Assembly: GCA_964247055.1 (NCBI GenBank)
Contig: OZ176052.1
Coordinates: forward strand, 8,494,001-8,558,000
Origin: Paragordius varius
Lineage: Eukaryota > Animalia > Nematomorpha
Direction of reading: 5' to 3'
DNA: 64,000 nt
Positions 16,001-53,873 of this stretch are shown piece by piece (within the stretch, counting starts at the first letter, position 1; each line of letters begins with the position of its first letter). A program made the position numbers and the translations under genes. Under the pieces are notes generated by a model. That model did no database searches, was not told the origin of the DNA, and saw only the letters and a program-made list of their open reading frames with translations.

Positions 16001-18612
16001 GCATTAAATAAACGAGCCAAACCGAAATCGGCCAATTTTATTTGCCCTCTATAAAATATAAATTATTGAAGGTAGTTAAATATAAAAATCTACACTACTA
16101 AATTCGTTCCTATAACCATTTAAAAAATATAATTGGTTTTAACAGGTAATGCATATGAAAAAGCGAAATAAGGAACATATAATTCATCAAAAATTAAATC
16201 AACTAATCCAAAATCACCCTCAATAAGAACTAAAATAACCATCAATGTCCAAACCTTTTGCACACCATATCCCCAAAATAATGTAAATTATTTTTCATAT
16301 AATAAAACTTTGTAAAAATTGAAACATTTTACACTATCTACCTGTTATTAAGCAAAATGTTAGATCCTTTAATATCGCGATGCAAAAAATTTCGGGAATG
16401 ACAGTAGGCCAGCCCATCCAACAACTGTTTAATGTAGGATGCAATGTGTTGATGACTGAATGCAACCATACCGCTATCCAAAATGCCCATTAAATCATGG
16501 TCCATATACTCAAACACCAGGTAAAAGGCACCTAATAAATAATATGCAATATATATATATAATGGTTCCCAACCTTTTTTGTTGACGCCCCCAACGAATC
16601 GAGAAAAAAAAACTTACCATCTTTATGCTGTTTGAACTCAAGGGCATCCGCTTTATCCGTTACGATATCTTTCAAATTAATAATGTTTGGGTGTTGGAGT
16701 TGACATAAAATTTTTATTTCGCGAACGGCTGTGATGGGAAAACCTTCCTTTTCGTTTTCAAGACGGACCTTTTTAAGGGCAACGATATCACCTAAAAAAG
16801 TTATCATTAGAAATCAGTAATCAATAAAAAAATAATTTTCAAATAATATATAAATTGAAAATATATACCATCAATTTTATCTTGAGCTTTGTAAACTTGT
16901 CCATACGTGCCTTCCCCAATTTGTGCCATAATATCGTACATATCCAAATATTTCTTACCAAATGTATGTTTATATGCATTTTCTTTATCCAAAATGCTAT
17001 GAAATACAAATTAAATGACAATGTTTTGAAATATAATAAAAAGAGGATTATACATTTTAGGTTAAATGCATAAGTGCGTCAAAACAATAAATAAATTAAA
17101 TTATAATAATGTGCAAAATAGGCATTTATGAATAACTAGGTTGGTTGTTGCACAAATATTTAAAAAACGTGACTAAATATTGTGGTTTCCAGTTCATTCA
17201 AAATTACAAAATAAAACTTCCAGATCGAGGGTTTATGTCAAACGGCTGTAATTACCGTTATTTAAAGCATTTAAAATAAATAGCTAACAAATAATAAACA
17301 TAGGAGCTACTTTTCTCTAAAATACATACTTATAAATATAACAAAAAATAAATATCATATGGGTTATTAAAAATTAGAATTCGTCCAAAACATTTTTCGA
17401 TTAATTTCTTTTTTAATATATTTGAGAATTAATGTGTTTCACCAATAAAAAGAATTAATAGCAAAATATTCAGAACTATATAAATTACTACTAAAATATT
17501 AAAAAGGCGAGTGATATATTCTAAACAGTAAAATAATAACAAATTTTATATAATAGCGTCATTAAATTCCAAATTAATAATTTATCCAAAAAATAATATG
17601 TATTTACCAAATTTTTCCACGTAATATGTTGCGGTCAGCAAGAGGGATGGACGATGATGATGGTAACCTTTTTGCTTCATGAAATGATGAAATGTGCGTA
17701 GTATTAGAGCTCTGATGTAATAAAACTTTTGAATTTGTTTTATGATGATGGTGTTCATAATTATTGTTAGTTTCATCGCTATCAAAGATTGGAGGTAAGG
17801 GTAAAGATGTGATAGATTTTGTGGTCGTTACCGATGTGACAACAGATTCTGTAATAATATTGGGGGATTGGGTTTTTAATTCTTTCGATATAATATTCTT
17901 TAAAGGTGATAGGATAGATTTTTGCTTCTGTGTTGGATTTGAAGATTCTGGGGAAATATTGTTATGTAATTTAACTGTGCCTTCTGACTTTTCATCCACA
18001 TTAATTGATGATACGCTATCAGTTGGCAATTCTATATTAGTAATGTCAGTGTGGTTTATTGGAAGAGGTTCATTATTATTAATTTGTTTAAGTGGTTGGA
18101 TAACTTTTTCAATTTTAGGTTTTGATTTTTGGGATAATTTTTCAAGGGCTTCGCGGTCTTTACGTATTTCAGCAGCTAAATTTTCAGTGTATTGATTCCT
18201 CATGCGCAAAATGGCACTCAAATTGGAATCTTGGTCTTTAGAATGTTTTTTGTGCTTTTTATGCTTGTGGCTCTTTTTCGCTTTTTCATCATGATGCTTA
18301 GAACTTAACGGTTTGGGTGAAGGACTTCTTCGATTCCGATGATTAAACTCATAATCATGTTTATGCTTCTTTTCTTTTGGTTTATGCGTTCTAAAAGTTA
18401 ATCGAAAATATACCTATCCTTTTTTGAAAAATATGGACTTGGTGTTTTATCTCCGTGAATATCATCGTAGTGACGCTTTCTGGAAACACTATATAATAAA
18501 AAATATATAAATTATAAAACGATTTTAAGGTTTAATAGTGAATCACATACCTAGATGATAAACTTTCATCAGAACTTATATCTACATAAAAATTTTTTCG
18601 AGGTTTTGACAT
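13039..18612 (-). CDS. CDK12: cyclin-dependent kinase 12/13 (about 987 aa), 13 exons
   Basis: Exons (minus): 18612-18551, 18488-18414, 18390-17608, 16996-16869, 16791-16618, 16531-16342, 16048-15887, 15677-15483, 15169-15038, 14749-14574, 14174-14149, 14091-13975, 13782-13039; total 2964 nt, all phases consistent. Motifs: [105 protein letters not shown]. Confidence 0.95.
18391..18413 (-). other. candidate 23-nt GT-AG intron (CDK12 intron 2)
   Basis: GTATATTTTCGATTAACTTTTAG joins a 75-nt exon to the next exon in phase 2; retention gives an in-frame TAA. Skipping the 75-nt exon also keeps frame, so the call is less forced than in DPH5. Confidence 0.6.
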
Positions 18613-27499: not shown

Positions 27500-28540
27500 T
27501 ACCCGTTCCCCCCGTAAAATGCCATTTTCAAAATATAATTTTTTGCCCAGGGTATGAGACCGTTAAAATTCACTGAGGATTCCAGGTATTCCCTGTTAAA
27601 AGGCAAAAATTTTACTTGCGTTTTTTAATATTGGCTGCTGGGTAAACAGATAGCAGCTATAACTGCGCCACTATATAATTGCTTGTTTTGGAGCTAATTT
27701 ACAGAGAGCTCATTGTGTGTGTGTACAGTCGAGGTCCATTATATTGTAAATGAAACTTCTCCATAAATTGCGGTTTTAGTTTTAATGTTTAGTTCAGCCA
27801 AGGTTGCGTGGGTTTCTTGTTGAAAATTGTCCATCCACCTTATCCTTCTTCGGCCCCTTTTACGTGTACCGCTAACTTTACCCAACATCAAGAACTTTTC
27901 CAGTGAATTAGATCTCATAATGTGGCCAAAGTAAGATAGTTTGGTGCGGATGGACATTCCGAGCAATGACATGTCGGGATTGATTTTACTCAAAATTGCA
28001 TTGTTAGTAATTTTATCCGTCCATTTTATTTGTAAAAGTTTTCTCCACATCCACATTTCAAAGGAGTTAATTATCCGTGTGTCGGATTTTTTTAAAGTCC
28101 AACCTTCACACTCGTAGAGGAAAGTTGGAAAAAATTGCATTTGTAAGTCGAATTTTCGTTTTTAAGCTGACATCATGGGATGCCCATATTTTGTTATAAT
28201 TATTTGCGTTTGAAAAGCTTGAAATATTACCCGTAACTAGGTAAAATTAAGGTCGAGCTTTTTTTATTAGCCGTTAATTTTGGGCCTTTATGCCTTAAAA
28301 ATACGCCATCATACAATGATTATTTAGTGTTGAGATATTTTTTCGAAAACCCATGAGAGGATGGTATCAAAGATGATTCCAAATATTTGCCCTATATAGG
28401 TGAAAAATTTAAATCTGTGCTTTTCCATATAAGTCTATGGTTAGGGGTCTACCGGTTTTAAACTAAGACGCCATACTAAAATGGCGGTTTTGGAGCTAAT
28501 TTTCAAAAAACTTAAGAAGCCATACGAGTTCAGTTAAACA
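27500..28540 (+). repeat. fragment of the Helitron tandem array, split by an RTE LINE
   Basis: acccgttccccccgtaaaatgccatttt, ctgggtaaacagatagc and aaaagcttgaaatattacccgtaactagg match the units at 23850-25420. Confidence 0.85.
27706..28200 (-). mobile_element. 5'-truncated RTE (BovB-like) LINE 3' end
   Basis: ORF 28140-27739 reads LYECEGWTLKK..INSFEMWMWRKLLQIKWTDK..KLSYFGHIMRSNSLEKFLMLGKVSGTRKRGRRRIRWMD, the RTE ORF C-terminus, followed by a (CA)n tail at about 27713-27723. Confidence 0.9.
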
Positions 28541-30224: not shown

Positions 30225-32465
30225 TCATAATTTTCTTAATTCAAATGTAGCGTTTGCAGGGGTATCAGCAACATCACTGGGTAAATTGCTTTCATTTTCA
30301 GTGTTTATAAACTTTTGAAGAGTAACTCGTATGTCCTGCTTTTTAGATAAAAAATCTGAATCATTTTTCGAATTTATGCCATTTGTTCCATTTTCTGACT
30401 CATCAACTAACAAAGAAGCCATTTGACTTGAATGTGGTCGACTCCAAGGATTACTAGATGAAGCACTCTCTATTGATTTAAAAATTATTTTCACTTAAAA
30501 TATAAAAGTATGATATGAGTATATAAATCATTACATTAACGAAAAGTATTATTCTGGTATTAATTGCCTAAAGGGAATTTAAGTTACATGTCTGTGGCCT
30601 GGCATAAGATTTTTCATTCCATTACTTGCATATTTAATAGAAAATAATAATTTTTTCTCTTTAAGGTATATAAGGTCGAAAAATTTCATACATATCGTTA
30701 AACATTAATGTTTATAAAAATATGATTGTCTTTATTAAAAAAAACATTTTTCCATTTGACTTTTACGCTTTATCCTTAAAATTTTAATTTTTACTGTAAT
30801 ATATATTCAGAAAAGAAAAAAGGGAATATACCCAACAATTTCATATAACTCTCATTGATTTCAGCACTCCGTAACGTTGAAGCTTCAATGGCGGCTATAA
30901 GGGAGGCACGAAAACCCATTTTCTCCAGAATGTACACGCTGCGTGCTGTACAACCACCCGGGGAACAGACATCCCCTTTAAGAGCACCGAGTCCTGCATT
31001 GATACTTTCACTTGGATGGGCTGGATAATTGACGATAAAATTTAAAATTAAAAAAGACAAATATTTATCATTTTCAACTAAAAAATTTCATTTAACATTT
31101 AAATATTTCATCCATGTTTTACGTGTTAATTTTTTTTAAAAAAAAGATTTATCCAGGCAAAACTTTATTTTTCATTTATGGTTAACATTTTTAAATAAAT
31201 GTTCTGCATTGATATTGCCACTGGGGTGCTCATGATAATATTATACAACTTTTTCAATGTTTCCAAACATTAATGAAGACTTATTTCAAATATCCTATTT
31301 TAATTTTCTTATTTCGTCGAAACTGAAAAAATTATTTAATCATGTATTACATACTAGCTATAAATTCATAAATAACAATTATTGTTAACGAATTAAAACG
31401 GGAGCCTAAAATTATAAACGATTTTTAATATGAATATCCTAAGTTAATTTTATTAATCATGGGCGATTTTATAAAAATGTCATCTAAATCATGTTTTAAA
31501 CAAAAACTGTCATAAAAACATCCAATTTTAACACATACCCTTTAAGCACATTTGAGCCGCACCAATGAGCGTATAAGCAGCTAATCGTGTGGCCTGGGCT
31601 CGGGAAAGACCCATCATAACAGCCCCGTCAACAAGAGATTCCAGAAACATGAAAGTATAAGCCGGACCGGACCCGCTCAATGCAGTAACGCTATCCATTA
31701 GGCTTTCATCTTCCAATTCCTCAACCATACCCACGGAACCGAGAAGAGAAACTAGGAGTTTAGGGTCGCTTGGTTTAACACTGTTCCCTAAACAATAAAC
31801 CGAGGTTCCTTTACCAATTTGCATAGATATGTTGGGCATAACACGTGCTACACGGGTGTGTTGGGGTAAGGCCTAAAAATATAAAAGTAAAAATTAAAAT
31901 CAGAGATAAAACATAGGAACTAAAAGGACACAATTATATATTACATAATTGTAATCATAAGGTTTATGTAGGAATCAAGGTCTTTCAAAAAAATATCTGT
32001 CTTTTGAGAGTTTAGTCTGTATTTCAATTATTTTAGTTATTTAATCTATTTTTAAAACTAAATCAATCGATTAAATACCTTTTCTATAAAATTAAGGGTG
32101 CATCCCAGGGAGAATGATAGGATAAAGTGTTTTTTAGCAACGGCTGAGGCTATTTCAGGTAAAATTATAGGCATGACGTTTGGTTTAACGGCTAATATAA
32201 CTACATCACTAAACTTCATAACATCATTATTACTGTGAGTGGTATCGATTCCTAGTTCCTAAGCATTATTTAATTAAACATTACTGATATGGAATCCAAA
32301 AAAAGGCTATCAACTTTTGTTTTTGGGGCACTTGCAATAATTTGATTAGATTGATACTTGCCTTTTTGTTAATATATTCATACCTGATAAGAGCAGGCCT
32401 TTTGTCATCGCTTGTGCGACTTTACCTGCTCCAATAAAACCAATCCGCATTGCTGCCTTACTCAT
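30225..32465 (-). CDS. PYCR: pyrroline-5-carboxylate reductase (about 368 aa), 6 exons
   Basis: Exons 32465-32384, 32361-32285, 32258-32079, 31872-31539, 31020-30832, 30469-30225 (1107 nt). Motifs: RIGFIGAGKVA, VVILAVKP, RVMPN, VTALSGSGPAYTF, LKGDVCSPGG, GFRASLIAAIEAS. The last exon is a non-conserved tail with an alternative acceptor at 30493. Confidence 0.93.
32259..32284 (-). other. 26-nt GT-AG intron (PYCR intron 2)
   Basis: GTAATGTTTAATTAAATAATGCTTAG; retention gives an in-frame TAA; removal gives LFLDSIS|ELGIDTTHSN, aligning without a gap to the P5CR family. Confidence 0.88.
32362..32383 (-). other. 22-nt GT-AG intron (PYCR intron 1)
   Basis: GTATGAATATATTAACAAAAAG; removal gives GLLLSG|KYQSNQIIASAP (cf. 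human PYCR1 GFTAAGVLAAHKIMASSP); retention frameshifts to a stop. Confidence 0.88.
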
Positions 32466-32636
32466 GGTAAGTATGAATGAATAGAACCTCAGATAATAAA
32501 GATAGTATTAGTTAAAATTTAATTTAATCTGCTTTTCAGAGATTAAAAGGGATTAAATACGTTGTATGATTGTTTCATAAAATATAATTTAAAGCGTATG
32601 ATAAATTTGTATATCACATTTTTAGGTTAGTTACTC
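32466..32636. promoter_or_regulatory. 171-bp divergent (bidirectional) promoter/5'UTR interval between PYCR and DPH5 start codons
   Basis: Head-to-head ATGs at 32465 (-) and 32637 (+). No specific promoter motif recognised. Confidence 0.6.
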
Positions 32637-33624
32637 ATGCTTTTTTTAGTTGGACTTGGTTTATCTGGTATTAAAGATATTAGTTTAAAAGGCATTAAAA
32701 TAATACGTTCTGCGGATAAAATTTATTTAGAGACTTATACATCTATATTATTGGATAACATTAATGACGAATTGGTATCCATTTGATATTAATTATTAGA
32801 CCGCTTTTTATGGTAAACCTGTAGTATGTCTGAATCGTGAAGGAGTTGAGGAAGATAATGGTATTATTTAAATATATTTAGAATATATTATCGAAGCAAA
32901 AAATTTAAATATTGTCCTTTTAATTATAGGCGACCCTTTATCGTATAAATTAACATAATTTTAGCGCAACAACTCACTCCGAAATTTTATATAGATGCAT
33001 TCAAAAAAATATTCCTTACAAAATAATTCACAATGCATCCATATTGACAGCTATAGGAGATACTGGATTACAAGTTAGTTGTGTAAAATATGTAAGTTAT
33101 ACCGGTTTGGTGAAATTGTTTCTATTGTGAATTGGACTGAAAATTATCAACCTACAAGTTTTTACGACAAAATTGAGCAAAATCTGAAACGAAATTTACA
33201 TACTTTATGTTTACTTGGTAATGCAATATAGTATATTTAGATATTAAATTGCAAGAAAAATCAGTTGAAAACATCATAAAGTAATATTTTGATATTTAAT
33301 TATAATTAGAAACCGGAATATATATGAACCACCATTTTTTATGACAATTAATCGAGCTTTAACAATTTTCACAAAAATTATGGAAAACTCAAGTTGTCTC
33401 CTAAAACGTAAAATAAAAATAACCATATAGCTTCAACTAGATGCTTTGGTGTTGCCAGATTAGGCTCAGAAACTCAATGTATTGCCTCTGGGGAAATCCA
33501 AGAATTATTAAATTTTGATTTTGGCCCAGAGTTACATTCATTAATAATTTGTGGGGAAATGCATGATTTAGAAATGTTTTTTTATAATCATTTTCACATA
33601 TCAAAAATAAATCCAATTTATTAA
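32637..33624 (+). CDS. DPH5: diphthine methyl ester synthase (273 aa), 8 exons, all introns 21-29 nt
   Basis: Exons 32637-32774, 32800-32860, 32882-32942, 32965-33073, 33097-33217, 33241-33280, 33310-33407, 33431-33624 (822 nt). Protein: MLFLVGLGLSGIKDISLKG..KIYLETYTSIL..LIIGDPLSATTHSEI..IIHNASILTAIGDTGLQLYRFGEIVSI..SFYDKI..LHTLCLLDIKLQE..IYEPTIFMTIN..CFGVARLGSETQCI..GPELHSLIICGEMHDLE, collinear with DPH5 over its full length. Confidence 0.95.
32775..33430 (+). other. seven ultra-short GT-AG introns of DPH5
   Basis: 32775-32799 (25 nt), 32861-32881 (21), 32943-32964 (22), 33074-33096 (23), 33218-33240 (23), 33281-33309 (29), 33408-33430 (23). Each removal restores the conserved frame. Confidence 0.92.
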
Positions 33625-34088
33625 CATATATCACAATTTTTAAAGTAACTATATAATATAAGCCAGGTATTTAAAAAACCAAAATCAATGATATTATTAA
33701 GTGATATGAAGTTTGATGATATATATTTACAAGAATATTTATACTGAGAACATGAATCATGTGTATAAGCAATATTTCCAATACCCAAATTAAAGAAATT
33801 AATATTATTAGCCGAATGTAAATAAAGAATATCTAACATTTTTTGATAGACATTTATGTTTCTAATAGATGGAGGAATTTGGATAAATTCATTTGATAGT
33901 TCAATCATATAGTTGGTAAAATCATGTTTGGAGGGATTATTTCGATAAACATAATATACTAGTGTGGAGCCAGATATAAAAAAGCCAGATTTTAGAGGAT
34001 TGTTTTTAATATCATAAAAGAGATCTCTAAAAGCGATTCGATAATCTGCCAATAAAGAGGTTGCTTTATTTTGGATTAATTTGAGCAT
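33621..34088 (-). CDS. TIMM29: mitochondrial import inner membrane translocase subunit Tim29 (155 aa, apparently intronless)
   Basis: SLLADYRIAFRD..IKNNPLKS..NPSKHDF..IPPSIRN..NFFNLGIGNIAY..QYKYSCKYI..IIDFGFLNTWLIL..KNCDI matches the Tim29 pattern (cf. human ALLRDY..RARP..APATRN..YVNLG..LDVGFVGRWWVL..DCDIN). Confidence 0.85.
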   Translation of the reverse strand: MLKLIQNKATSLLADYRIAFRDLFYDIKNNPLKSGFFISGSTLVYYVYRNNPSKHDFTNYMIELSNEFIQIPPSIRNINVYQKMLDILYLHSANNINFFNLGIGNIAYTHDSCSQYKYSCKYISSNFISLNNIIDFGFLNTWLILYSYFKNCDIC

Positions 34089-34451
34089 AAACGCGCCTTA
34101 CATACAAAGGTAAGATGTGTGTTTGAGATATTAATAATTTTCACTATTATTTTTTTTTACTTTTTTGTACTAATTTGCTTTTTGGGGTAGTTTTACATCC
34201 TAGGCTTAGTTTTTTAAATAAACTACAATAATCTATTTCAGTTTAAATTTAATTATTCAACATTGTTCTTTTGTATTAGAGAAAAAGTTTGATTTTTAAC
34301 AGTATTGTGACTTCTAGAGTCTTAAATTGGACCACAATCGAACTATACAGCAGATTTTAAATATTTTTTTAATTAAGTTTTGCTGGTAAGATGCAGTCTG
34401 GACGAGGGTTAATTATTTACAATTCTAAAATATATTTGCCTATTGTATTAA

Positions 34452-35042
34452 CACTTCGATTCAAATTGGGGCATCTAAATATCCTAGGCTTAATTTAAAC
34501 TGATATTATAAAATATCTACTGATGGCAACGGTTCCAATTAAAAATTACTTCTATCTTATTAAAAAAATAAGTCAAAATATCTAAATAAAATTTTGTTTT
34601 AAAAAAAACTTCCATGTCAAACTACTTCGACGCCATTTTTATTTTACAAATTTTTGCAAAATATCGTCTTCATCTAATTTTAAGGGTAAAAGCTAATTTT
34701 TTATTTAAATTACATCTAACATTGATGGAAATAGAAAAAGCAGTTTTGTATTATTTTTCAATTTCACATTGCACACATGTCACGTTTACCAAATTTTAAC
34801 CTTTCGGTTTTAGCTTAAAATAAACATTATGAAGTATTTTTCAATTAAAATTTTTACATATTTCGGTTTATTAATGTTATATAAATGCAAAATTTTGCCA
34901 TGGTTTCAATTTCTTCCATAATTTTTTATAGAATTTAATTTTAAAAGGCCTAGGTTCTTGTATATAACACATTCATTTCAGTCCTTCGATTCAAATTGGG
35001 GTAGTTATTGGGTATTTAGATACCCCAATTTGAATCGAAGTA
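34452..35042. mobile_element. TTAA/piggyBac-type MITE, 591 bp
   Basis: TTAA at 34448-34451 and 35043-35046; inverted termini cacttcgattcaaattgggg / ccccaatttgaatcgaagta. Confidence 0.85.
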
Positions 35043-36844
35043 TTAAAGATTTAAAAAAATATAGAAAAAAAGGCGGCGAAATTAGGAATTTTTTTTACAT
35101 TTTTTTTAAAAATTGTAGTCTAAAAGGCTTAAGAAAGAACATATTAAAATTTCACCTTAACTTAAATATTTAAATTATATTTCCTCTCTGCGATAACTAA
35201 CCCAAAAGGTCCTGAGGTGTTAAAAAATTTTGATGTTGTTTAAAGTCTTAAAATCAACATTCGTAGATAATTCGTTTTTGTAATACAATTATATATTAAT
35301 TACAATCCGTTTTTAGCAGTTCAACTTGTTGATCTATATCAGGACTTCTTAAATTTTTTATGATTCCCGACCCCATTTATTATTGCGAGTTTTTTAACGA
35401 CCCCAACAAATATAAAAGAAAATGAATAATTATTTTTAGATAATAAATATATTAAGTAACAATATGCACTATGAAAATATATAAATTTAAAATTAGGTTT
35501 GTAACATATAAAAATCTGAAATTGTAATTTGCACAAAATGTTATAGGAATATTTTCATTATAGTTTCAAAAACAATTCCCGTCTTTCATTCTCTCGAATA
35601 TATCCAAGTAGTTGCGTGGTAAATATTAAATTAAAATTTACGTTAAAAATTTAATGAGGTATATGTGCCTGTTTTTTATTGCATAACAAATCAAATCTTG
35701 GTGTAATGTTTCAAACTTAGATGTAAGACTTCTTCAACATTTTTTATCGCTGAACGATATTGGGATTTAACGTGTGTTAAAGCTGAGAAAGAAACTTCAC
35801 ATAAATATGTGGTGTTGAATGACAGAAGTACATTTAACGCTATATAAGCGATTGTGGGAAATTCCGTTCTAGTTCCGATCCAGAATTCAGCCAAGGGCTT
35901 TTTTCGGAATAGTGATTTAAAATTCGAGTCACACGAAAGCTCAGCAAATTCCCTTTGAGCTTTAAGTGGCGGATGATCAATCTCACTTAAGCTAATCCAA
36001 AACGGCTTTTAAATTTAAACTATTTTTGTCCAATATTTAATATAAAATATGTCCGAACTGTATTTCGAGCGCTTTTAAGTGTTCTCAATAGTTTATGCAA
36101 TAAGAGTTTTACAATATCAATCACAAAATTGTCGACACTGGAAAACATTTTGAACGATTTTTTTTCGACCCTACTTTTCCAAATGCTGATCTTTTAAATA
36201 AAACTCTCAAATTTTTCGTTCGAAGTAAATATATCGCAATTTTTTCCGCTAAGAGACAAGTGAAGATCGTTTAACTTCGCAAAAGTATCTATCCAAACAA
36301 CACGGCTTGGATAGATACAAGTCATTTAGAAAAGGAGCAAATTCACATGTAAAAAGTTCAATCTCGTCCTCTAATAACAATATTCTTTTTAGACTTTGAC
36401 CTCTTGACAACCATCTTGCTACTGCATGTAATAACAAAGTTATTTAGTAGGAATCCGTATCCTTACAGAGATTTGAAAATAAGTGACTGTTAAGGGCATG
36501 GCTCTTATATAAATTTATGAACTTAACACCATCCTGAAGCACATCGTTCAATGGTGCTATTTTTTTTGCTGCAAGAGCCTCTCGATGAATAAGGCAATGA
36601 GTAAAAGTTATATGATCATATTGAACAACTTGAAAAAACGACTTAAACCAATATTTTGCCCGTCATCGCTCTTGCACCATCTGTGCATATTCCACAGCAA
36701 TTTTTCCATTTTAAACCTTTTGCTTTTGAAATTCGTCATTACGATATATGTCTTTCTCTGTAATATGATCTTCCATTGGACAACAAAATAACAATTCTTC
36801 CTCCACGCTTTCATTACCTTATTCACCGATACTCTTTCCAAAAA

Positions 36845-48987: not shown

Positions 48988-51900
48988 ATGGGACCTTCTA
49001 ACAGCTCTCGGAAACTTACGACGATTTTTGCGTCAGCATGTTTCCTTATAGTAATGATAACATGCTTCGTAATTTTACCCTATTTTTACAGTCAAATGTC
49101 GAGTCTTAAAACTGAACAAAAAATTATTGTGGAAGATATGATTCATTCTTTGATGGAAAAACAAGTGATTGTCGAACAAATGGAGGCCGAACTCAAACGA
49201 TTAACGGTAATTAAAATGTTACTAAAGAAAAGTAATTTTACCAATGATTAACTTTACATTGACATAACCTACATTTGAAGCAAGCATATTAATGTATATG
49301 GAAACTATTGCAAATAATCCTTAAACTGTAACTATACATTACTATAGATAAAATATAAACATACCAATTTATTTTTTATAATCTTGATAGTTATAGGAAA
49401 TGGTAAATATAATCACGTATGGCTAATACTAGTTTTTATACATACGATCATATTGAAAAACATAAATTAAGTTTGAGGTTGTTTTTTGTTTCGCATCAAT
49501 TCAATTTTACAACCACACATGAGTTTGCATTATTATCCAATTAATTTTAATCACTCATATATATACAATTGAATAAAATAATTAGGAACTTAAAGAGAAA
49601 ACTTTGGCAAAAAACGGGAAAAGCCGCCGAATTGCTCAATACAAACGCTCAAAACGGAGTGCTGAAAGTGAGACAGCAGAAGTTGCCAACCCTGATGCAT
49701 TAACTGGTATTTCTTTAGTTTAGCGATATTTGTTTTAATAGATCCTAGCATATAATTATTAAAATATTTCTCTCCTCCAGATAAATCATCAGTGACCGAT
49801 AGTAAATCTGGATCATTGAGCGAACGTAGCAAGCGGACTGATTATCATCACAGTTATGATGATTACGGTGAACCACGTGGGACGAAAGATGTCGAAGCTG
49901 GCAGAGATGATGCAAGATACATTGAATTGCTCAGAAATTTACAACAAACTGGTAAACATTATATCACTTAACAAAAAAATATATTTATATATTCCAATCC
50001 ATTGTGTTTTAAAAATATATTTTTTTGTTGGACATAGGCGGGATTGTTGAAGTAGATTGCGGATGCCCAAACGGAAAGCCAGGTGAACCTGGTCCCCAAG
50101 GACCAGCAGGTAGCGCAGGTCAACCTGGAAGTCCCGGAAAAGATGGACAGCCTGGTCGACCAGGCCATGACGGACAACCAGGCAAACCCGGTCCAGATGG
50201 AAAACCAGTAATGAATTGATTAAAAATTACAAAAATTAGATTAAAGTCAAAGCTATAAATTGAAAACGCCCTTATTTGATGGTTAACATATTAATATTTT
50301 GTAAAGAATCTCATTATGCCTCCCTATTTTATTGGACTTTGGTGCGCATAAATTACCAATGTTGTCAATTAATTATAGGGCCCTGCCGGACCCCCAGGTC
50401 GAAATGGTAATGATGGAAGACCAGGAAACGCTGGACAAAATGGTCGCCCAGGACCAGACGGACAGCCAGGTCGAGATGGCCAACCCGGACGTGATGGACA
50501 AAACGTATGAAATAAAAGAATTTTATTGATTATTAATTCCCTAAAAACACTTTTTTTATATTAAACGATTTGATTTGAAAAAGAATAATTACTTAACTGT
50601 TTCCAAAATATAGGGTTCCCCTGGTAGAGACGGTGAACCGGGTCGTGATGGCGAGCCAGGATCCCCAGGCGAACCTGGAAAAGATGGTGGAGATGGAGAA
50701 CCAGGAAAGCCAGGTCAAGATGGAGCCCCTGGACCAAGAGGACCCGGTGGACCTAAAGGTATGTTAGTGTACATAGAACACATTAATTAGTAACTAAAAA
50801 TTGAATTAAATTACAACACAAATTTTGTGAATTAGAGTAATAAAGATAAAACGTAAAAAGTGAAAAATTAATATTTATTTTAGAAAATCATATATTTTAT
50901 AACTTTCTAAAAATATTCTATAGTTTTGGGTTTTAAATGTATGATGTGGTACTTTTTGTATCGCAACAGTAATTATATAGTTAAATAGGAAAAATTAAGA
51001 AAAAATATGGTAATTTTTATAAATATGTCTTTTAATTTTGTATCTCTTTAAAATTTTAACTTTCAATTAATTAATAGAAGGTTTTGTTAGCAAATATATA
51101 TTTGCCTTTTTATTAAAAAGCAATGTAAAAAATATAATCCAACGATTTTAATATCTTCAGCATTTATGTAATACTAAAATGCAGATAATTTCATACAATT
51201 AACTATAAAAAATGGTTAAAATATACAATATAAATACATCATGTTATCATAGGTGTCGATGGCCAACCCGGAATCCCTGGCCGTGATGGTCAACCTGGCA
51301 AAGATGGGCTACCAGGAAAACGTGGTCGTGACGGGAATCCCGGGATTGATAGTAAGGGTCCAGGACCAGCTGGTGATGCTGGAACACCGGGGAGAGATGG
51401 ACAGCCTGGTTCGCCAGGACCTGACGGTAAACCCGGAAGAGACGGGAACCCAGGACGCGATGGCCAACCAGGAAACCCTGGAAAGGATGGAGCTTCTGGT
51501 TCCCCGGGTATTGATGGCCCACCCGGCAAAGACGGTATCCCAGGCCAACCTGGTAAAGATGGACCAGCCGGTAACCCTGGCCGAGATGGGAAACCTGGTA
51601 TCCCAGGCAAACGTGTAAGTTAAAAATCATTATTACCCGTAATTAATGACTTTAAGTATTTTATTTAAAATAAAAATTTTATATGTAAATAAAGGGATCC
51701 CCTGGAGATGCCGGTCCTGATGGTAAAGATGGCTTGTCAGGAAAACCAGGTAGAGATGGAATCCCAGGCTCAGATGGTAAGCCAGGTGTTGATGGACGTC
51801 CTGGAGAAAATGGATTGCCCGTATAAATTTTGTTATTTTGTTTGATTCAAGGCAATCCCAAAAACAATAATCTAACCACTATGTTTTTGTTCATTCTTAT

Positions 51901-53873
51901 CAGTATTGTTATAATATATATTATGAATGAGGGCATAAATTCAAATCTTATGCACAGGGTTTAGACGGAGATGCCGGTAGAGATGGAAGAGATGGGGCTC
52001 CAGGCAACAAAGGCCGGGATGGGTTACCAGGAGTCGACGGAAAACCTGGCAAAGATGGCCGCCCAGGGAGTCCGGGAAAAGCTGGTTCTAAAGGGCCTAA
52101 AGGAGAATCTGGAGCACCCGGTGCCGACGGTCATCCAGGAATCCCAGGTATAATCAAATTTTTCACATTCACAATTGAACTAACTATTCATTTTTTTGAT
52201 CAATGCAATGTAAATGGGTGATAAATATATATATTTGTTAATTAATTTGGCCAGTTTTATTTAAATAGGGAGGTTTTAAGTAACTTCGGATGTTTTAAAT
52301 TATTGTACAGTTACAATGTTTGACGAACGTAATTTACATATTGTATAGTTTGATATTTATATTCAATATTTTTCCCTAAATTTAGATTCTCTACCAATAT
52401 AATTTTACATATACCCATTGTTAATTCCTATAAAAATTTCTTACATGGTTTGTAAATGGCTCGTTTATAAGATTGAATTACATGTATGATTATTAACCTT
52501 GTAGGTAATGATGGTCCCCCCGGACCCAATGGCGAACCCGGTCCACCAGGCTCACAAGCAGGTAATCCCGGTCGTCCTGGCAACGATGGCCGTCCCGGAA
52601 GTCCAGGGCCATCAGGGGCTCCTGGTCCGCGTGGAAAAGCTGGGAATCCAGGCCAACCTGGAGGCGCAGGCTCTAAAGGCGATTCAGGAATCCCAGGGAA
52701 AGATGGTGAGTCCGGAACTCCAGGCTCACCTGGGCAAGATGGTCAACCTGGATCAAATGGAACACCTGGCCGTTGTCTCAATGAATGTCAAGCCGATAAC
52801 AGGAAAATTAGTATATAATCATTTTTTTTATTTTAATACTTTTAGGGCTATTAATTTTGGTTTTAGTCCATTTGTTATTTTTATGGGCTTATTCAATTAT
52901 TTTGGTTTTATTTTTAAAGCTTTGTGTGGTGGTTCCGTTTATGTTCATTATGGTAAAAAAACTTGTGCCGAATCGGAGACAAGAGCCCAAGTTGTATACA
53001 GTGGTTACATTGCAGGCGGTCATTATGCAGATAATTATCCAGGTGGTGGCCACAATTATCTGTGCTTACCCGAAAATCCCAACTTTGAGAAGTAATATTT
53101 TTTAGTTGATCAAATAAAAGTCTAACCAAATTTTGAATTATCAGAGAGATCACTGTGTTTTAACTTAAAACACAACCTAACAAACTGCTTCTTATATTAT
53201 AAATACAAATTATCAAGTCTAGATAATATTTTTTAATTATAGTATTATATGGCTCTATCATTTTACGCAGTTACATCGAAGGCTTTTCTTCGGGCGATGA
53301 CAACGAAGGCGGATCCAGAATTTACGGTGCTGAATATCGTGTATATCCAGAAGCTTCTCCATTCATTGGTGTAGAAGGAAACATTAAGCAGAAACAGGCT
53401 GTTTGCGCCGTTTGTTACACCAGTCATATGTGCCATCATGTTATGATTCCGGGAGCTGTAGAATGTCCAAGAGGTTCATAATTTTTAAATGTCACTGATT
53501 TTTACGATGTTTAAATTATTAATTTAATATAAACCCTATTTCCGCAATTAAATTAAAAACTAATCACGCGCGTTTTAAAGATTCATTCTACGAAAATCAT
53601 GCTAATACAGATTTTATAAAGTAATTTTTATATGTATTATATATCAATTATTTAGGTATGGTTAAGGAGTATGGTGGCTACCTTATGGCCCTTAACAACA
53701 AATTTTGCCGTTCACAATACATTTGTGTGGATGAAAGCCCAGACTACCACATAGATATTGATAACGCTGGGGATGGAAGTGCTCTTTACATCGTTGAAGC
53801 TAAATGTGGTGCTTTGCCTTGCAATTCATACCCCGATGGTCGTGAAATTGCATGCGTTGTCTGTGGAAAATAA
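48988..53873 (+). CDS. type II transmembrane collagen (about 842 aa) with cuticle-collagen-like N-terminus and spongin short-chain (C4-like) C-terminal domain, 13 exons
   Basis: Exons 48988-49206, 49586-49706, 49781-49951, 50038-50207, 50379-50504, 50614-50758, 51253-51614, 51695-51820, 51958-52147, 52505-52810, 52920-53091, 53271-53473, 53656-53873 (2529 nt, phases consistent). Domain order: TM segment, coiled-coil-like stretch, RSKR twice, DCGCPNG, about 150 Gly-X-Y triplets, GRCLNEC, then [95 protein letters not shown]. Confidence 0.9.

Follow-up and report, generated by a model that had tools for sequence, protein, structure and literature searches.

A gene for diphthine synthase (DPH5), the methyltransferase responsible for diphthine formation on elongation factor 2, was recognized at positions 32637 to 33624 on the forward strand of the window, which is the whole stretch of 64,000 nt analyzed here. 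It is very probably a working gene that has retained the full set of seven ancestral metazoan introns, each shrunk to 21–29 nt, and these introns are most likely spliced by the U2-type spliceosome. This reading is drawn from the comparison of sequences; comparative and population evidence together make splicing of the seven segments the most likely interpretation.

It was stated in the initial annotation that no long open reading frame (ORF) runs across the unspliced region 32637–33624 on the forward strand, and that removal of seven GT-AG segments of 25, 21, 22, 23, 23, 29, and 23 nt yields a complete product of 273 amino acids. The list of ORFs agrees with the former statement. A script found all seven segments, with a total length of 166 nt, and their excision leaves a stop-free frame of 822 nt, which starts with the ATG at 32637, ends with the TAA at 33622–33624, and encodes 273 amino acids. 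All seven segments start with GT and end with AG (14 of 14 splice dinucleotides are intact), and all are shorter than 30 nt in the window sequence (21–29 nt). The motifs described across the junctions, GDPL|SATTH, GLQ|LYRFGE, CLL|DIK, and IIK|NRNIYEP, were also recovered when the spliced product was aligned.

The DPH5 loci of the brachiopod Lingula (L001), the spider Argiope (L002), the amphioxus Branchiostoma (L003), and the calcareous sponge Sycon (L004) were used as comparators. Each comparator protein was mapped exactly onto its own DNA, and the alignment columns were taken from a MAFFT alignment. The structure of the gene, with the evidence for each part, is as follows.

32637..33624, + strand: predicted DPH5 (diphthine synthase) gene from start to stop codon, with 8 exons and 7 micro-introns (script and homology).
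32637..32774, + strand: exon 1, 138 nt, amino acids 1–46 (TIGR00522 positions 1–43, E = 8e-13; diphthine synthases in PDB).
32775..32799, + strand: intron 1, 25 nt, phase 0, GTA...TAG, containing TTAAT (column and phase of intron 1 of Lingula, Argiope, Branchiostoma, and Sycon).
32800..32860, + strand: exon 2, 61 nt (alignment).
32861..32881, + strand: intron 2, 21 nt, phase 1, the only one with a length divisible by three, containing an in-frame stop codon (comparator positions).
32882..32942, + strand: exon 3, 61 nt (alignment).
32943..32964, + strand: intron 3, 22 nt, phase 2, at coding nucleotide 260 as in all four comparators.
32965..33073, + strand: exon 4, 109 nt, equal in length in all four comparators (TIGR00522 positions 89–124).
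33074..33096, + strand: intron 4, 23 nt, phase 0, at coding nucleotide 369 as in all four comparators.
33097..33217, + strand: exon 5, 121 nt, of the same length as in the comparators (TIGR00522 positions 125–164).
33218..33240, + strand: intron 5, 23 nt, phase 1, at coding nucleotide 490 as in all four comparators.
33241..33280, + strand: exon 6, 40 nt, of the same length as in the comparators (comparator loci).
33281..33309, + strand: intron 6, 29 nt, phase 2, at coding nucleotide 530 as in all four comparators.
33310..33407, + strand: exon 7, 98 nt (alignment).
33408..33430, + strand: intron 7, 23 nt, phase 1, three columns off intron 7 of the comparators in a gappy loop.
33431..33624, + strand: exon 8, 194 nt including the stop codon (TIGR00522 positions 201–249).

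The identity of the product is indicated by its parts as well as by the whole. Separate exon pieces match the diphthine synthase profile TIGR00522 in colinear and non-overlapping order, at profile positions 1–43, 89–124, 125–164, and 201–249 for exons 1, 4, 5, and 8, with 48.3, 33.6, 45.1, and 39.8 bits, respectively, each of which is below the cut-off of 114.3 bits that applies to the whole protein. Exon 1 also matches the Pfam domain TP_methylase (PF00590) and the solved diphthine synthase structures 1vhv and 3i4t. The spliced product is 47% identical to the Branchiostoma DPH5 over 275 aligned columns (E = 1e-94), its residues 1 to about 268 align with annotated animal DPH5 proteins, and the identity to animal DPH5 proteins is 44–49% in the 30 listed of 120 matches. 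Among these 120 matches, there was no sequence from a nematode, nematomorph, dicyemid, or myxozoan. In the alignments with the four animal DPH5 proteins and with the protein P0001, the conserved motifs GLGL, GDP..ATTH, HNAS, GLQLY.FGE, LHTLCLLDIK, YEPP, and LHSL are all present and unbroken, and where the product is aligned with the first half of P0001, none of the seven junctions coincides with a gap. P0001 (558 aa) is itself a single product with two tandem DPH5 domains, and the window protein aligns to both halves. A second tandem DPH5 may be represented by P0151 (471 aa, Cherax quadricarinatus, "diphthine methyl ester synthase-like"), to residues 201–462 of which the window protein aligns.

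A comparison of the intron positions with those of other animal DPH5 genes had been suggested with the initial annotation, and it was favorable. The phases match at all seven introns and the alignment column is identical at six. Introns 3 to 6 interrupt the coding sequence at the same nucleotide and in the same phase in the window and the comparators (260, phase 2; 369, phase 0; 490, phase 1; 530, phase 2). Introns 1 and 2 lie at nucleotides 138 (phase 0) and 199 (phase 1) in the window and at 135 (phase 0) and 196 (phase 1) in the comparators. Intron 7 is in phase 1 throughout, at nucleotide 628 in the window, 637 in Lingula, Argiope, and Branchiostoma, and 682 in Sycon; in the MAFFT alignment, the window intron is three columns away from that of the comparators, within a gappy and variable loop. 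Exons 2, 4, 5, and 6 have exactly the lengths found in the comparators (61, 109, 121, and 40 nt). Thus, the DPH5 genes of Lingula, Argiope, Branchiostoma, and Sycon resemble the window gene in seven intron phases, six columns, and four exon lengths, whereas their introns are 125–9140 nt long and those in the window are 21–29 nt long. On this comparison, the seven putative introns are descendants of the ancestral metazoan DPH5 introns.

Intron 1 appears to be of great age because many first-exon fragments from unrelated eukaryotes stop at the residue at which exon 1 ends in the window, and then run into GT. Such exon-1-like fragments (P0002, P0003, P0011, P0099, and P0047) were followed to contigs, and the contigs L005–L008 cover four of these five. 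The DPH5 loci on these contigs had been candidates for relatives of the window gene, and they were rejected: they belong to unrelated organisms, and their introns are ordinary or lost. L005, a Logan contig of SRR26065853 (953 nt, 25% GC), carries the DPH5 of an AT-rich eukaryote that is not a close relative. This gene has no counterparts of introns 2, 4, and 5, and its introns elsewhere are about 100 nt long.

GT...AG pairs are common in the DPH5 region because its GC content is only 27%, and 2124 GT-AG segments of 21–29 nt are found on both strands of the window. In the control for chance, 200 Markov-shuffled sequences matched in composition were each allowed up to 12 GT-AG removals of 19–32 nt. 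None of the 200 could be converted to a stop-free sequence, while the real DPH5 sequence needs exactly seven removals. The intron positions, the homology, and the shuffle control together rule out chance as the source of the predicted introns.

Retention of any one of the seven introns brings a premature stop codon into the message, and in six of them the stop lies inside the intron itself. For the analysis of splicing signals, ten micro-introns of the window were pooled: the seven from DPH5, two from the neighboring gene PYCR, and a probable one from a CDK12-like gene, the last of which has no homology backing. The 5′ end is GTA in nine of the ten and the 3′ end is TAG in eight. The motif TTAAY occurs in six of the ten, as against 12% of the GT-AG segments of 21–29 nt in the window (p = 4.5e-4, small sample), and its second A, a putative branch site, is located 7–15 nt from the 3′ end of the intron. 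There is no pyrimidine tract, and the 3′ ends are A/T-rich.

These signals suggest how the micro-introns could be handled. The ordinary U2-type spliceosome would excise each of them from the pre-mRNA, recognizing it as a unit (intron definition) by minimal signals: GTA as a short 5′ end, a TTAAY-like, A-rich branch site at 7–15 nt from the 3′ end, and TAG as the 3′ end. A retained intron would put a premature stop codon into the message, and unspliced copies would then yield no enzyme and would probably be degraded.

The DPH5 locus is found as colinear unspliced contigs in five public DNA runs (X1–X5) from three samples. The match to the window is exact for X5 and nearly exact for X2 and X4, and X1 and X3 diverge from it by about 1%. 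No DNA contig from the five runs skips any of the segments. Since the segments are carried by the contigs of all five runs, they are real DNA, and neither assembly errors nor DNA-level deletions. Among the listed variants, the two 1-nt indels within DPH5 both fall in introns: one at 32952 shortens intron 3 from 22 to 21 nt in X3, and one behind 33286 lengthens intron 6 from 29 to 30 nt in X1–X4. The only exonic indel listed is an insertion of 3 nt (AAC) behind 33605 in X3 and X4, which adds one residue near the C-terminus. Eight exonic SNPs are listed, of which five change a third codon position of the spliced frame without altering the amino acid, and these five are spread across exons 1, 3, 4, and 5, which occupy different genomic frames. 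Four listed SNPs fall within the 166 intronic bases. The difference in variant density between introns and exons gives p = 0.027 when indels are included and p = 0.13 (not significant) for SNPs alone, with small counts and for the listed variants only. Such a distribution, in small numbers, would be expected if the spliced frame is under purifying selection.

If DPH5 were instead an unprocessed pseudogene, its segments would be unspliced relics and its spliced frame would simply not have decayed so far. Such a state would agree with the appearance of the spliced form in no RNA run (the locus is absent from X9–X11) and with the loss of many universal genes in horsehair worms that Cunha et al. 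are said to have described in 2023. It is nevertheless very unlikely, as the frame of 822 nt is intact, every conserved DPH5 motif and all 14 splice dinucleotides are kept, the listed frameshifting indels are confined to the introns, the exonic indel is 3 nt long, and of the eight exonic SNPs listed, five are synonymous. Removal of the segments at the DNA level, as with the internal eliminated sequences of ciliates, or their origin as artefacts of long-read assembly deserves almost no credence: the sizes do resemble those of the eliminated sequences of Paramecium, but the segments end with GT...AG and not with TA...TA, they match ancestral spliceosomal introns in position and phase, and they are present in contigs from five independent DNA runs and skipped in none.

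The RNA-labelled runs X9–X11, which bear the same species label, contain no sequence of the region 30300–35300 with DPH5, PYCR, and TIMM29, even at 88% likeness. The lack of three housekeeping genes in these runs may mean that another species is included under the label or that the assemblies are very incomplete. X8, from the same study as X5, has a word share of 0.00.

DPH5 is one of three genes in a very compact island that adjoins high-copy repeats, and the adjacent repeat exceeds the genes in word depth by a factor of hundreds. The neighboring features are as follows.

30832..32465, − strand: PYCR (pyrroline-5-carboxylate reductase), at least 5 exons, divergent from DPH5 (F420_oxidored and P5CR_dimer domains); the 3′ end lies beyond the traced part.
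32362..32383, − strand: PYCR intron 1, a micro-intron of 22 nt.
32259..32284, − strand: PYCR intron 2, a micro-intron of 26 nt.
32466..32636, no strand: spacer of 171 nt between the start codons of PYCR and DPH5, a putative shared promoter region.
33621..34088, − strand: TIMM29, a single-exon ORF convergent with DPH5 (Pfam Tim29, E = 2e-28).

The stop codons of DPH5 and TIMM29 overlap in one TTAA (33621–33624), and therefore the 3′ UTRs of the two genes must overlap on opposite strands. The Tim29 product is animal-like, with arthropod clusters as the nearest in Atlas. In addition to its two micro-introns, PYCR has introns 3 and 4 of 206 and 518 nt. An ultra-short class beside ordinary introns had been proposed in the initial annotation, and PYCR bears it out: as this gene mixes micro-introns (22 and 26 nt) with longer ones, the micro-intron class coexists with ordinary introns in the genome. 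With seven in DPH5, two in PYCR, and a probable one in the CDK12-like gene, micro-introns are a recurrent class in the window and not a single case. The probable intron of the CDK12-like gene, 23 nt at 18391–18413 on the reverse strand (GTA...TTAAC...TAG), joins two open stretches in a low-complexity N-terminal part.

Several other observations concern the surroundings of the island. The repeat at 34396–35142 has a word depth of about 10^5 in X1–X4 and about 10^4 in X5, compared with tens to about 10^3 for the neighboring genes. It is probably a MITE or another transposon with hundreds of copies because its depth is high and many contigs join or break there. A 133-aa ORF at 27739–28140 on the reverse strand resembles, in its translation, the C-terminal part of the reverse transcriptase of non-LTR retrotransposons. 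In a collagen gene at 48988–53873, the N-terminal ORF matches the nematode cuticle collagen domain PF01484 weakly (E = 0.002, below the cut-off), and Gly-X-Y repeats are found further on. This weak match fits a cuticle-bearing worm better than a dicyemid or a myxozoan. Rfam and tRNA scans of the 64-kb window gave no matches. The TIMM29 ORF and six other ORFs of the window have no entry in the protein collection searched, and searches for homologous proteins with the exon-1 ORF and with TIMM29 yielded no hits.

Introns shorter than 30 nt are known in ciliates, nucleomorphs, and microsporidia. Among animals, only dicyemids were named in the initial annotation, which was incomplete, since a paper from September 2026 adds the myxobolid myxozoans (PMC13644364). 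In its survey of 51 annotated animal genomes, which is built on existing annotations, introns shorter than 30 bp were found in two lineages only, dicyemids and myxobolids; both are tiny parasites with reduced genomes, and the trait was linked to genome reduction (PMC13644364). The median intron is 27 bp in Henneguya salminicola and 22 bp in Thelohanellus kitauei and Myxobolus rasmusseni (PMC13644364). The assumption that this intron class had not been described for the present taxon held in the literature searched, which links no horsehair worms with short introns. The genome preprint of the horsehair worm Gordionus montsenyensis, in which annotation was performed with STAR and BRAKER with AUGUSTUS, reports 26.93% GC, 63.8% repeats, and a BUSCO score of 71.6%; the word intron is absent both from this preprint and from a comparative preprint on Nematomorpha.

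The predicted mechanism resembles that of both animal groups already known for introns shorter than 30 nt, to which Nematomorpha would probably be a new addition. In DPH5, all seven ancestral introns of one gene are at 21–29 nt, and each can be matched to an ancestral intron. If the source is a horsehair worm, the trait would have a third origin, and the miniaturization of introns would be separable from the compaction of the genome as a whole. The default minimum intron length of AUGUSTUS is 39 nt. This setting would forbid introns of 21–29 nt, and genes like DPH5 could thus be fragmented or missed. It is plausible, at most, that missed genes bear on the low BUSCO score of Gordionus montsenyensis (71.6%) and on the claims of gene loss in Nematomorpha. 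The broadest reading can be offered only tentatively: a third independent animal lineage with introns shorter than 30 nt might be represented here by a large macroscopic ecdysozoan, and not a miniaturized parasite, with a repeat-rich genome, in which whole conserved genes such as DPH5 are built only with such introns and are broken or missed by gene finders with a higher minimum intron length, and part of the reported gene loss in horsehair worms might be an artefact of annotation.

The GC content of the window, 27–29%, is close to that of Gordionus montsenyensis (26.93%) and of Henneguya salminicola (29%, PMC13644364), while it is 36.7% in Dicyema japonicum (PMC6736024). Tim29 and the ancestral metazoan intron positions show that the source is an animal. 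Its GC content and the weak collagen match agree better with Gordionus montsenyensis than with Dicyema. A source within a lineage already known for such introns, a dicyemid or a myxobolid myxozoan, is unlikely; in that case, the introns would be real but not new. Ciliates such as Paramecium share introns of about 25 nt with the window, and retention of these introns likewise creates premature stop codons; however, ciliates have such introns only and use a different genetic code, whereas the window shows the standard code and two size classes (PMC5014332). Dicyema japonicum has many introns shorter than 30 nt at conserved exon–intron positions and a repeat-rich genome (49%), as in the window, but its genome is 67.5 Mb in size and short introns are the rule there, with a mean of 38 bp (PMC6736024), whereas in the window the micro-introns stand beside introns of 206–518 nt in the neighboring PYCR. 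Given the repeats of Dicyema, the present genome would not be the first repeat-rich one with such introns. The myxobolids have GT-AG introns shorter than 30 nt at conserved ancestral positions together with longer introns in the same genomes, and their 5′ signal is cut to GTa, A residues replace the branch site, and a true pyrimidine tract is lacking (PMC13644364). They are microscopic cnidarian parasites with compact genomes of 20–200 Mb and, depending on the species, relatively few transposable elements (PMC13644364). In contrast, the DPH5 gene of the window stands among high-copy repeats, the DNA looks like that of a cuticle-bearing worm, and the 3′ end of the introns is mostly TAG. The signals of the micro-introns match the published description of myxobolid and dicyemid introns (PMC13644364), and it is concluded that these predicted introns are of the canonical U2 type and would be recognized by intron definition.
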